From contig NW_005434571.1 of the NCBI RefSeq assembly GCF_000315625.1, positions 14,027-78,026 on the forward strand: 64,000 nt of DNA, in the 5' to 3' direction. This DNA comes from Guillardia theta CCMP2712 (Eukaryota; Protista; Cryptophyta). Positions 23,652 through 27,982 of this stretch are shown here, piece after piece; positions within the stretch are counted from its first letter, which is position 1, and every line of letters begins with the position of its first letter. The position numbers and the translations under genes are program-made. The notes beneath the pieces are model-generated. The model did not search any database. It had not been told where the DNA came from and was given only the letters and a program-made list of their open reading frames with translations.

Positions 23652-24472
23652 GGTGGTAGACTTTCGATGTCGCAGAATCGGATCCGGAATACTCAAGCGA
23701 TGGAGAGGTTCTGAAGTTGAAGGCAAGTTGATTGTGCGAAGAAAGACTAGCGATGACAAGAATCAAACTCAATCTGAAGAAGAATCCTGTCTGTTGCAGT
23801 AACCGATGGCCGCAAAGTTGATTCTTTCCGGGAAGGGAGAGGAGAAGAAAAGTGTCGGAGGGTGATGTAGGGTTGAAGGAGAAAGTTTAGGGGAGCTAGG
23901 AGGAGGAGACGCTCGTGCTATTACGACAACGTCAAGGTATGGACGGGGAGGCGAGGAGCAAGTAAAGGGGCGGTACTCAAAAGAACACGCAGCAGCAGAC
24001 TAAAATGGGTAGGGGTGGTACATGTACCCCTATTTTTCTCATACTATACACCGGTACTTTGTACGATCGTAGGGGTACAACATGCAAGCTGACTGCCCAC
24101 ACGTAAGCCCTTGCTTACTAGCAACTTGGTCATAGGGGATGTACGACCCCATAGACGTAAAGTACCAGTTCGTATCCAAAATAAAAGGGGGGGTACATAC
24201 AACAAATCAAAATGGGGGTACGAGATTGAGTACCCGGTGGTTCCAGCGCTATTTGACGGGTAGAGAGACCGAAAAAGTCATCGACCGGTCTCATCTCATC
24301 CTAGCTGTGAGTCAAGGTGATGCATTAAGTGACTTGTAAAGCTTTCAGTGATTCCGCGGCGTCTCGGGTCGGGCCGACCGAACCCGGGAACAAGAGGTAT
24401 AACTATACAACTCGAAGGTATAAACACAGTCTACCCAGTGGATCCTCACAAACCATCGGAGAGGACGAGGAG

Positions 24473-26716
24473 ATGAAGGCGGCAAGCATGCGGCTCAAGA
24501 ACCTCCTGCTTCTCCTCTCCCTCCCTCTCGTCCTCTCCTCCTCTCCTTCTCCCACAGACCTGGTGCGCCTCAGCTCATCGCGTTTACGAGGTGCGCTAAG
24601 GTACTCACCAGGGATCATGGCGATACATTGCTGGGCTGAATCGATGTTGCAGAAGGGCGGTACAGGAAGAGGAGACATGCATCCAGCGTCTGATCCCTTT
24701 GAGGTGCTGAAACCCTTCACTGCGACCCCCGTGTAGCTCGTGCTGCCCTCCTGTTTGCCCTCCATTCCGTGAGCAGCTCTGATGACAACGCAGAGGGGGC
24801 GCAAACCCAACGGGAGAGTCGACCAAGAGGATCTTTCAAGACACGCGGAAGCTGTAAGAGTCGCTGTCTCACTTCGCTTGCAAAATGATTGCTGCCTCTG
24901 CTATGAGCTGCATGTTCGTGAAGACACAGATGAGACCAACTTGTTCAGTCAAGTGACATGCGCTTTCCGCTTGCTTTTCTGTTATCCCGATTAGCAAGTC
25001 AGTCTGTGCGATTATAGCGATAGAGCGGAAAACATGTCTGTTTGTTTAGCTGTGTGCTATTTAGTTGCTCCATACTCGATCTCGTATGCCAACACATGCT
25101 CCAGACGTTCTTGTGTGTTTGAATGGATCCAGCTCAATCGATCTCAAATTCCGGTCAAAGACTCGAATCTTTTCCACTGACTTCTGGAATCTTCTCTTTC
25201 TCCAGGCAGATGAGCAGTTTTAAGGTGATCGTTACAAACGAGAAGACCATGAGGGAGTTCTCCGTGCTGTTCCATGGCCCCAAGGACAGTAAGTCTATCA
25301 GCAGAGGGTTCTAGTTGAGGTGTAAGGAGACTAGACCAGCGTTTCGAAGGAAGGAGGGCAGGGAAATGGGGGGTTGAGACTAAGATGAGGGGAAGGAGTT
25401 TAGGATCTGTTTCTTTTCTTATATCTCCTCTACAATCTCCTATCTTCTCCTCTACTGTCTACACTGTCTGCCCTCACTCCTTCCGTTTCTCTTCTCTTTC
25501 ACGTGCTTTGTGCCTCCCTCCGTGTCTGCCTCTCTTCTTGTTTTTTACGCACGCACACCCTCCCTGCCTCCCTTCCTTCCTGCCTCTCTTCCTCCCTTCC
25601 ACGCTGCCTCTCTTCCTCCCTTCCTTCCTGCCTCCCTACCTGCCTTTTTGTCTATTTGTCTTGTCTCTTCTACCGGCTCTCCCTTCCCCCTCCCTGCGTT
25701 ATTCCCTGCCTCCCTCCTCCCTCCCACCTGCCTCTCTCCTCCATCCATTCATCGTTCAGTTCTGACAGCTGACATGCGCAGCTGCTTACGAATCAGGAGT
25801 CTGGAAGGTGAATGTGGAGCTCCCGGTGGAGTATCCTTACAAGTAAACCATCCATGCTTCGACTACCTCCTTCCTGACGCTCTATTAGATCGCCTTCTAT
25901 CGGGTTTGCCAACAAGATTTTCCACCCCAACATTGTTGCACATCTCTGCACCAACTCATTTGTATTGACATGTCAGCAGGATCTGCAATCCGGATCCGTA
26001 TGCCTCGATGTTATCAATCAAACTTGGAAACCCATGTTTGATCTAGGTACATCCTCCCTGCCCTCCTCCGGTCCCTCCTTCCCTGTTGCTTTTCGTTGTA
26101 CCTGCTCTTGCATGCTCTCGTCTTTTGTGCATACACTGCTCCTCTGCACTTTTGAGTAACCTGGTCTTATCATGATCCCTTTGCTTGCCTGCTTGCTATC
26201 CTGTCTCTTTGTTTGACTCTTGTACACAGTGAACATCTTCGAAGTATTTCTTCCGTGAGATACTCGCTGCCCTCTAGGACATACTCTAACACTCTGCAGT
26301 CAGCTACTGACATATCCTAACCCTAGTGACCCTCTCAATGCGGATGCTGCTGGTAAGCAGGAGCTTTATCTATTGTATTGTTCCTTAACAGTTTATGCGG
26401 CACAAGCTCTGTCCATGAAGGATCCTCAGACCTATCACTCCAAGATCCGTATGTTCATCGACAAGTATTGTCAGGTAGCTTGCTGAAGCTATGCTGCCAT
26501 GGGGTTGCATGGAATATCTCACGAGAAAACTTGCAGGGGGTAGAAGAAGAGTTTATGAAAGCACTTCCAAGCGAACAGCAAAGTACAAATCGACATGTTG
26601 CTGCAAACCCGGAGAGGTGAAGAGCTTGTTTCAGCAGCGACACTGCTGTTGATTTCTTTGTTGTCAGTCTGTGGAAAGAATCGTCATCGGAAGAATCCTC
26701 GTCTGGAGATGAGTAA
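24473..26716 (+). CDS. UBC8/UBE2H-like ubiquitin-conjugating enzyme E2 with N-terminal signal peptide and LRGG-ending linker; multi-exon
   Basis: Spliced: [19 protein letters not shown]...[94 protein letters not shown]; exons 24473-24600, 24653-24703, 24794-24853, 25206-... in frame; last exons less certain. Confidence 0.85.
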
Positions 26717-26878: not shown

Positions 26879-27982
26879 TTACTTGACCTTGACACGGCTG
26901 CAAATTCTTTTCCTCGCGTTGTTGAACCAATGAACGATCTGTTCAACCGAGAGACCAGTAGCCTGAGAGGTATGGGTCAGCTTTCGGATTTGTTCGATAT
27001 ATCTTCTCACGTTTGCGAGCTGCTGCTTCTCCAACAAATTGGGGAACGGATTGCGGAAATTTGCAAATAGCCATTTCTGTTTGAAGTGAATAAGCTACAA
27101 ATCCAAGTGTAACAAAGGAGTCAATACCTGAAGAATAGTGACAGAGTCCCTCGAATGATGCCTCCTTCCCTTCTTTGACTTCTTGGAGACCCTCACTGTA
27201 CCATCGCCACCCTTGTCTTCGTCTTGCATGAACGACCGGTTTTGCACACCGTCGGTATTCCCGGCAAGCAAGGCATCCCTGGCACTCCTGAACGCGTTGG
27301 ATTGGATGGCAGCCATCTGATACTCTTGTGCTGCTGCAATCTGAGCCAAGAGAGCGACACCACTGCAGATGTCCGCCCTGACTGCAGGAACGTCTTCTGG
27401 TGACTTGGCAGTCTTCTTCTCTTCCACGATGCTTTCCTCGAGATGGTTGAGCGCTTCGTCGAAAAGGGATTGGTCATTCAGGCAGTCTTCCTCAGAGTTC
27501 TTCTTCATCTTCTTCTGGCTGAGCTCATCCCACAGCTCGTCAGCTTTTCTCTTGCCCAGGAACTGATCGATCAAGCTTGATCGTGGACAGGCCTTGGGTG
27601 AAACTTCGCAGTCAAACACGAATCCTTTTGGCACGAAGCTCTGAGGGAACAGAAGTGAAGAATCTTTCAAAGCCATGGAAAACCTCTGGAAGGTTGGCAG
27701 CTTTGTGTTGTGAACGTCTTGAAATCTCTTGTGCAGGAAAGATGCGGTTTCGTCCATGGCTAATTGGATGTGACCCATGTCGTCTTCGGAATTGGGTGAG
27801 CCAGTTTCAAGGGGAGAGGAGGAAGCTTCGATCTCCGTTACTGAGCGGCAAGAGCAGTCGTCTTCAAAGGAGGAAGCAGACTCTGTGCGAGCTTCATTCA
27901 CTGACGATACAAAGATCCTGATGTTAGGCAACATCAACTTGGTGTGATGGGCGTCGATTGATGGCAGGTTGGACACGAGCAT
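26879..27982 (-). CDS. TALE-class homeodomain transcription factor (3 exons)
   Basis: Spliced C-terminus RRHHSRDSVTILQ|KWLFANFRNPFPNLLEKQQLAN|ATGLSVEQIVHWFNNARKRI: three-residue loop extension, PFP for PYP, WFxN helix 3. Confidence 0.88.

Follow-up and report, generated by a model that had tools for sequence, protein, structure and literature searches.

A predicted periplastid Ubc8/UBE2H-type enzyme of Guillardia theta carries a ubiquitin-tail box at the end of its leader

Two questions are open for complex plastids: how residents of the periplastid compartment (PPC) differ from cargo bound for the stroma, and which enzyme trims their leaders. The rule described for periplastid leaders demands a non-aromatic residue in the first position after the signal peptide, with Leu excluded too, and concerns that residue only (PMC3101018). 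The ubiquitin-conjugating enzyme (E2) of the import machine SELMA belongs to the Ubc7-like 'Atg7' group in all red-plastid lineages, including the duplicate found in cryptophytes; this group and a Ubc6-like group of stramenopiles are the only plastid-predicted E2 groups, and the Ubc8 group contains no candidates (PMC12412216). According to the same study several SELMA parts of cryptophytes arose by duplication of host genes, cryptophytes lack the deubiquitinase ptDUP of the other lineages, and PUBL as well as a nucleus-encoded ubiquitin with a bipartite leader occur in Guillardia theta (PMC12412216). Here we describe a gene from a stretch of 64,000 nucleotides of G. theta CCMP2712 (contig NW_005434571.1, positions 14,027 to 78,026; G000:C103:14027-78026 in our numbering), hereafter called the window. 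It encodes an E2 of the Ubc8/UBE2H type preceded by a leader of putative signal peptide, spacer and a sequence resembling the tail of ubiquitin, I-P-L-R-G-G, in the following called the box. We consider it probable that the protein is a cryptophyte paralogue of Ubc8 carried on a bipartite leader into the periplastid compartment, where the box would form the border between leader and mature enzyme and most likely the cut site, and where a ligase of the GID/CTLH type would be the partner of the enzyme.

The gene consists of 12 exons at window positions 24473-26716 on the + strand, with GT donors and AG acceptors. Its features are as follows:

24473..24600, + strand: exon 1; start codon, putative signal peptide (residues about 1-22) and beginning of the Ser/Arg/Leu-rich spacer; GT donor, phase 0
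24653..24703, + strand: exon 2; remaining spacer, ending in L-I-P-L and the first two bases of an Arg codon; AG acceptor, GT donor, phase 2; present in the deposited proteins
24693..24800, + strand: box I-P-L-R-G-G, residues 57-62; coding bases 24693-24703 and 24794-24800, divided by intron 2 (24704-24793)
24794..24853, + strand: exon 3; G-G, short linker and E2 helix 1; aligns with the N-terminus of the leaderless paralogue
25123..25205, + strand: end of intron 3; the in-frame ATG at 25123 is the start of a transcriptome open reading frame (ORF) of 204 aa from MMETSP (P0004)
25206..25288, + strand: exon 4; E2 core; codon 92 is GAG (Glu) in the genome, Gly in CAJ73851.1
25782-25842, + strand: exon 5; E2 core; placed by splice sites and mapping of the deposited protein
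25889-25934, + strand: exon 6; E2 core; HPN motif at 25923-25931
25980-26046, + strand: exon 7; E2 core; codon of the predicted catalytic Cys151 at 26001-26003
26230-26254, + strand: exon 8; E2 core
26300-26352, + strand: exon 9; E2 core
26407-26474, + strand: exon 10; E2 core; start at 26407 from mapping the deposited protein to the window
26537-26616, + strand: exon 11; C-terminal extension; from XP_005823789.1 mapped to the window
26668-26716, + strand: exon 12; Ser/Glu/Asp-rich end, TAA stop included; from XP_005823789.1 mapped to the window

Exons 1-4 have compatible phases (0/2/2/2) and canonical GT/AG borders. The joins 24600/24653, 24703/24794 and 24853/25206, proposed by a first-pass annotation of the sequence, fit these borders and phases and are found letter for letter in two deposited proteins, CAJ73851.1 and XP_005823789.1. 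Both proteins carry all four exons, the E2 exons being joined to those upstream. An upstream coding exon is also required because exon 3 has no in-frame ATG and a TGA lies just upstream at 24783-24785. As the annotation had stated, the sequence LRGG is created only through the splice between exons 2 and 3: Leu is encoded by the final complete codon of exon 2, the Arg codon is split over intron 2 into AG and A, and Gly-Gly opens exon 3.

The deposited proteins were found with the exon 1 peptide alone, which was searched against 1.84 billion representatives; exons were handled singly, and the full-length proteins are database records returned by this search. It led to a protein of 256 aa, CAJ73851.1 / A2AX45, named 'ubiquitin conjugating enzyme [Guillardia theta]', the cluster of which also contains XP_005823789.1/EKX36809.1 from the CCMP2712 genome annotation and the 204-aa MMETSP ORF. 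The exon 1 peptide is 100% identical to residues 1-42 of CAJ73851.1 and XP_005823789.1. CAJ73851.1 shows a single difference to the genome, Gly for Glu at residue 92, and is therefore a sequence independent of it; its accession series is older than the genome. Since 11 introns could hardly have been predicted without a cDNA, we take CAJ73851.1 as independent transcript evidence. The gene as such is ordinary and was already known, since the databases contained it as a ubiquitin-conjugating enzyme of G. theta before there was a genome. For G. theta proteins of the same accession series, leaders were reportedly tested in Phaeodactylum (Gould et al. 2006). The accessions CAJ73851.1 and XP_005823789.1 were not found in the literature searched, and the window E2 is not listed in the supplements of ASAFind 2.0.

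The leader has the form of a periplastid targeting signal. It starts with three basic residues, followed by a hydrophobic core of 11 residues (mean Kyte-Doolittle value 2.93) and a Ser-rich stretch. The putative signal-peptide cleavage region is rich in Ser and Pro, and Leu is unlikely to be the first residue thereafter. No Phe, Tyr or Trp is present before the E2 fold, in agreement with the annotated signal peptide lacking Phe at +1, the periplastid-type form. Counted from Met, 58 residues precede LRGG and 56 the six-residue box; the leader has 62 residues, of which the spacer accounts for about 35. Targeting of the E2 to the periplastid compartment is well supported in silico.

The leader had also been called ubiquitin-like, which holds true for the LRGG tail and fails for the ubiquitin fold. 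Pfam gave no match to the ubiquitin domain (PF00240) in the E2 protein, and AlphaFold showed no confident fold, with pLDDT values of 44-69 for leader residues 1-67 and below 50 for the LRGG residues. We also considered the spacer as a decayed ubiquitin. Aligned in register with the ubiquitin C-terminus the whole of exon 2 reached a score of 3 (p about 0.05), and a 12-residue stretch picked after the fact a score of 13 (p about 0.008); given these marginal post hoc scores, the missing Pfam match and the missing fold, this origin is unsupported.

The coding sequence of the hydrophobic core is CT-rich (window 24503-24553) and shows 85-90% identity to CT-rich tracts on three other contigs. Only this core has matches elsewhere in the genome, and a leader copied from another gene was therefore rejected. 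Similar CT-rich runs fill intron 4 (about 25400-25750). Signal peptides may readily evolve from CT-rich tracts, because Leu, Ser and Pro are the amino acids specified by CTN, TCN and CCN, respectively.

A leader that serves no plastid function would be in line with such an origin from a type of low-complexity tract that the genome contains in other places too: the E2 could be secreted, remain in the endoplasmic reticulum (ER) or endomembrane system, or function as a leaderless isoform with an internal start. The last variant could appeal to the transcriptome ORF P0004, which begins inside intron 3 and points to either retention of this intron or an internal start. We regard all of this as very improbable. 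The ORF starting in intron 3 is devoid of E2 helix 1, and an E2 can do nothing without the activating enzyme E1, ubiquitin and ATP, for which the PPC is the only known location past the ER membrane. Moreover, an orthologue described below keeps the same layout in an uninterrupted ORF with an unrelated signal peptide that is not CT-rich.

Genome-wide searches covered the 87.1-Mb assembly with its 669 contigs. A degenerate pattern for LRLRGG gave 353 matches compared to 255 for the reversed control. The first 100 of the 353 matches, located on contigs C1-C22, served as a sample, and the sequence of all 100 was inspected. Exact LRLRGG was present in 73 of them, with about 32 expected for free degenerate codon positions (binomial p = 3e-17); no ubiquitin genes were among these 73 places. 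In 40 of the 73 a Met and a hydrophobic core lie in the same open frame 28-110 residues upstream. For the 37 leaders of up to 75 residues, the distance from Met to box was 28-70 residues with a median of 44. The same upstream signal was detected in 5 of 17 near-misses that keep LRGG and in none of the 10 places in which LRGG is broken (Fisher p = 8e-4). The hydropathy rule used is crude: about 3 of the 40 look false, and leaders split by an intron, like that of the window E2, escape it. In two places of the sample the box directly abuts the N-terminus of a protein, which we take to be an EF-1alpha-like and a Trm112-like protein, respectively. The first-pass annotation had proposed a genome-wide check for LRGG after signal peptides, and within this sample the box recurs at the end of many signal-peptide-like leaders (40/73 against 0/10). 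The window box fits the pattern hydrophobic-x-hydrophobic-R-G-G, as do the L-R-L-R-G-G of ubiquitin and the L-S-I-R-G-G of the orthologue. The window leader is a slightly degenerate member of a class built from a signal peptide, a spacer and a ubiquitin-tail box.

Two pairs of LRLRGG places, G000:C13:130708-131205/133826-134323 and G000:C18:773613-774110/774754-775251, are recent duplicates sharing the same box and downstream sequence. The pair on C18 is in opposite orientation; one of the copies on C13 has lost the signal-peptide part of the open frame.

In the literature we found no description of a ubiquitin-tail box at the end of a leader and none joining LRGG with Guillardia; an earlier description is possible, as the key papers of 2006 and the supplements of the genome paper lay outside the search. 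One paper containing both LRGG and 'cryptophyte' was discarded, since it concerns an unrelated LRGGG in Omp85.

A profile search for leader-bearing relatives of Ubc8 covered 5.8 billion proteins and revealed one other N-terminally extended cluster, P0008, with 27 members from marine metagenomes. No further leader-bearing Ubc8 proteins were detected beyond G. theta and P0008; longer hits from Ectocarpus, Pylaiella and others are extended at the C-terminus only. The P0008 gene is an uninterrupted ORF in a compact genome. RPL5, encoded beside it, is 71-78% identical to that of named cryptophytes and at most 59% identical to any hit with a non-cryptophyte name, from which we conclude that the P0008 host is an uncultured cryptophyte. 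The contigs of this marine cryptophyte (12-15 kb) suggest a very compact and apparently intron-poor nuclear genome, in which RPL5, DENN, SH3, SNARE and bestrophin genes each form one long ORF and the spacers are short. The E2 gene of G. theta, rich in introns, contrasts strongly with it.

The signal peptides and spacers of the two leaders are unrelated. Both leaders end in hydrophobic-x-hydrophobic-R-G-G-A, namely I-P-L-R-G-G-A in G. theta and L-S-I-R-G-G-A in P0008. This bears on the possibility that the E2 is a periplastid enzyme in whose leader LRGG is a chance string, the leader being trimmed elsewhere, by an ordinary transit-peptide peptidase, or not at all. The spacer contains Arg, Gly and Leu at high frequency, exon 2 resembles the C-terminus of ubiquitin only weakly in register, the box has I and P in the first two positions of LRLRGG, and shuffled pairs of leaders had some 4-mer in common in 8% of trials. 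However, RGG occurred in both shuffled leaders in only 0.6% of trials, nothing but R-G-G-A with the preceding hydrophobic residue is conserved between the two leaders, and the box is situated at the border of leader and mature protein as in 40 other sampled leaders. A chance string therefore appears unlikely to us.

A box that recurs on signal-peptide leaders could also be a sorting or retention signal, a mimic of the ubiquitin tail that is read by the PPC import or ubiquitin machinery and separates residents from stroma-bound cargo. This would agree with the absence of ptDUP from cryptophytes (PMC12412216) and with the lack of a protease candidate among the UCH and Ulp loci. On the other hand, the box lies precisely where leader and conserved domain meet, in some proteins directly before the ancestral first residues; such a placement is predicted by a cleavage site and is not required by a sorting tag. 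Known ubiquitin receptors, furthermore, bind the globular body and not the tail. We rate a sorting function as improbable, and prefer cleavage at the box.

The search for a protease comprised the UCH (PF01088) and Ulp (PF02902) loci; the genome also has 47 matches to USP (PF00443). As a separate observation, about 20 near-identical partial matches to Peptidase_C48 (Ulp-like) lie in open frames of 400-1400 residues, for example at C42:52235-52591, C23:3599-3955 and C234:52634-52987. This looks like a protein of a mobile element rather than cellular SUMO proteases.

With regard to the enzyme itself, the annotation as an E2 of the UBE2H/Ubc8 type proved correct. Pfam found one UQ_con domain (PF00179) in the full protein, at residues 74-207 with 137 bits (cut-off 27), and nothing else; single exons yielded one weak UQ_con match since the pieces are too short. 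Among solved structures the best matches of exon 7 were 1yf9, 2onu, 2z5d (UBE2H) and 8pmq_E (yeast Ubc8), while exon 4 gave nothing useful in this comparison. Thousands of database homologues are named UBE2H, Ubc8/E2 8 or, in plants, UBC4/5 (E2 4/5). An alignment of 48 relatives shows no variation at H140-P141-N142 and C151. With this alignment, AlphaFold predicted the E2 core with pLDDT values of mostly 88-98, with dips to 83 and, around residues 151-160, to 63. The tail is short and rich in Ser, Glu and Asp; it resembles the acidic tails of Ubc8/UBE2H relatives. Judged by these features the enzyme is an intact Ubc8/UBE2H-type E2 that keeps its predicted active site.

Members of this type normally have no leader, as the annotation had remarked, and this applies to the canonical members as well as to a second Ubc8 copy in G. 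theta (on G000:C93). The second copy begins at once with the canonical N-terminus, has a long acidic tail, much longer and more acidic than that of the window E2, and is the ordinary cytosolic enzyme. Its Met1 aligns three residues past the GG of the window leader, which suggests that exon 3 is the former first exon, the start codon of which was replaced by a splice acceptor. We calculated a maximum-likelihood tree from 37 hand-picked rows, all of the Ubc8/UBE2H type, other E2 groups being outside its scope. The two leader-bearing proteins formed a clade (99/99) with long branches and stem. With weak support (44/83), it fell next to the cytosolic Ubc8 of cryptophytes and Goniomonas and apart from a well-supported clade of red algae, a placement which in spite of the poor support fits duplication of a host gene rather than a gene of the endosymbiont. 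By these sequence comparisons the window E2 is a fast-evolving Ubc8 paralogue confined to cryptophytes.

Since SELMA needs an E2 and the window E2 carries a periplastid-type leader, the enzyme could be the SELMA E2, or one of them, ubiquitinating incoming preproteins, as the first-pass annotation had suggested. Its apparent origin by host-gene duplication would match that of cryptophyte SELMA parts (PMC12412216). This role was not borne out, as the SELMA E2 of all lineages is found in the Ubc7-like 'Atg7' group (PMC12412216) and the window E2 is of the Ubc8 type. In addition, an essential import factor would hardly be expected in only two cryptophyte lineages, as is the case for this paralogue. 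Ubc8/UBE2H is the dedicated and exclusive E2 of GID/CTLH ligases (PDB 8pjn, 8pmq, by their titles), which also speaks against SELMA, and a role in SELMA is unlikely.

Eight CTLH-domain matches were found in the genome, two of which have a signal-peptide-like start and L-R-G-G in the open frame of the domain. The first of these (G000:C14:806563-807702, minus strand; locus 805264-808656) encodes a GID8/TWA1-like CTLH protein (E = 5e-12 to 9soc_B/7nsc_H, human GID8), the spacer of which ends in L-N-L-R-G-G about 110 residues before the part aligned with GID8. The second (G000:C97:26251-29445, around 27751-27945, minus strand) encodes a LisH/CTLH protein with a clean signal-peptide-like start, the leader of which ends in ..L-E-R-L-R-G-G; among solved structures it matches human MAEA best, with weak support (E = 0.037), and the nearest Atlas clusters are RMND5B/MAEA. 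No paralogues of the RMND5-like and GID8-like genes were detected in single-sequence genome searches. Taken together with the exclusive pairing of Ubc8/UBE2H with GID/CTLH ligases and the Ser-rich acidic tail of the E2, the two leader-bearing CTLH genes lead us to infer a GID/CTLH-type ligase as partner, hinting at a periplastid Ubc8-GID/CTLH ligase.

Several observations weigh against a periplastid E2 with a cleavable box. The window box departs from LRLRGG at two positions, and given the frequency of shared 4-mers in shuffled leaders (8%) the E2 gene alone would prove nothing. Apart from G. theta's own, the MMETSP transcriptome entries among the hits contained no close orthologue. P0004 shows that not every transcript is fully spliced, and is silent on exons 1-3. 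Most deubiquitinases need the folded body of ubiquitin, and the leader, to which AlphaFold assigns no confident fold, is without one. Within 1.5 kb of the domain matches, none of the UCH and Ulp genes was found to combine a signal peptide with RGG in one exon. Finally, the one clear RMND5-like RING subunit found has neither leader nor paralogue, so that the leader-bearing CTLH genes fall short of a complete second ligase.

Weighing these points, we still favor the periplastid reading, in which compartment, cleavage, class of the protease and ligase (E3) partner are inferred. Two added 5' exons would supply the leader with its signal peptide, a disordered spacer of about 35 residues and the box I-P-L-R-G-G. 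The protein would enter the ER co-translationally, lose the signal peptide, pass over the periplastid membrane and be retained in the PPC. The box would mark the border between leader and working protein, and most likely the leader would be cut there by a protease that reads a ubiquitin-like tail, leaving the E2 with an N-terminus of roughly the length found in the cytosolic enzyme. The box is thus probably a site, so far undescribed, at which proteins destined for the relict cytoplasm of the endosymbiont are trimmed, and it is plausible that a deubiquitinase-like enzyme cuts the leader. Because the E2 is of the Ubc8 type with a Ser-rich acidic tail, its partner in the PPC would most likely be a GID/CTLH-type ligase and not the SELMA import machine.

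A more far-reaching idea, which we put forward tentatively and would not expect to hold in full, is that a complete periplastid Ubc8-GID/CTLH module (E2, GID8-like and MAEA/RMND5-like subunits) is delivered on box-ended leaders. A tail-reading protease would cut at GG and shed the leader together with any ubiquitin attached during import in one step, replacing the absent ptDUP. The new N-termini might be readable by an N-degron ligase such as GID, possibly controlling starch and sugar metabolism in the PPC.

A conserved box at the border of leader and mature protein would provide a sequence rule for predicting the periplastid proteome of cryptophytes. It also offers a precise site for mutation (GG to AA) and a handle for finding a tail-reading protease. 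The window instance suggests that the box tolerates variation at its first two positions and can be assembled by splicing, and its carrier here is itself part of the ubiquitin system. The leader-bearing CTLH genes are a new lead: together with a Ubc8-type E2 they point to a ligase pathway so far unconsidered in the relict cytoplasm.

In the vicinity of the E2 gene, window positions 23959-24234 upstream of the start codon contain short direct and inverted repeats built on GGGGTAC / GTACCCC, e.g. TGTACCCCTA and TAGGGGTACA. This cluster could represent promoter elements or a small repeat relic. On the minus strand, at window 26882-27037, a TALE/KN-type homeobox exon (Homeobox_KN, 27 bits) is convergent with the 3' end of the E2 gene and lies about 165 bases past the stop codon.

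Elsewhere in the genome, at G000:C98:154069-157284, a ubiquitin unit without its own Met (..FQVFVKTL..) extends an open frame from upstream and has RGG-S-Y at its end; a second, weaker ubiquitin-like match precedes it by about 200 bases. The unit may represent the leader-bearing nuclear ubiquitin reported previously (PMC12412216).

Compared with the described systems, the window E2 shares its family, the HPN motif, the Cys and a Ser-rich acidic C-terminal extension with Ubc8/UBE2H (yeast Ubc8, human UBE2H, plant UBC4/5/6). It differs in the added leader of 62 residues, in its long branches and in a tail that is shorter and less acidic than in the cytosolic paralogue. Like the SELMA s_Ubc (Toxoplasma TGME49_295990 and relatives) it is a nucleus-encoded E2 with a leader of bipartite form, and it would likewise reside in a space derived from the endosymbiont cytoplasm, whereas s_Ubc falls into the 'Atg7' group (PMC12412216) and the window E2 into the Ubc8 group. 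With the periplastid bipartite signals of cryptophytes and diatoms it has in common the signal-peptide-like start, the Ser/Arg-rich spacer and the lack of aromatic residues in the leader, to the far end of which the window protein adds the ubiquitin-tail box.

In ubiquitin fusions, NEDD8, ISG15 and the substrates of viral LXGG-specific papain-like proteases, LRGG likewise stands directly before the sequence to be released. The precursors of ubiquitin and ubiquitin-like proteins, however, carry a folded beta-grasp body that is missing from the window leader, so the only fitting protease would be one that, like the viral enzymes, reads nothing but the tail. PUBL and the leader-bearing ubiquitin of G. 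theta are, like the window E2, components of the ubiquitin system routed by a leader to what would be the same compartment. They are true ubiquitin folds, in contrast to the window E2, which has only the tail motif upstream of an unrelated enzyme. Since a real ubiquitin tail is present in the periplastid compartment, enzymes that read such tails must be there too.

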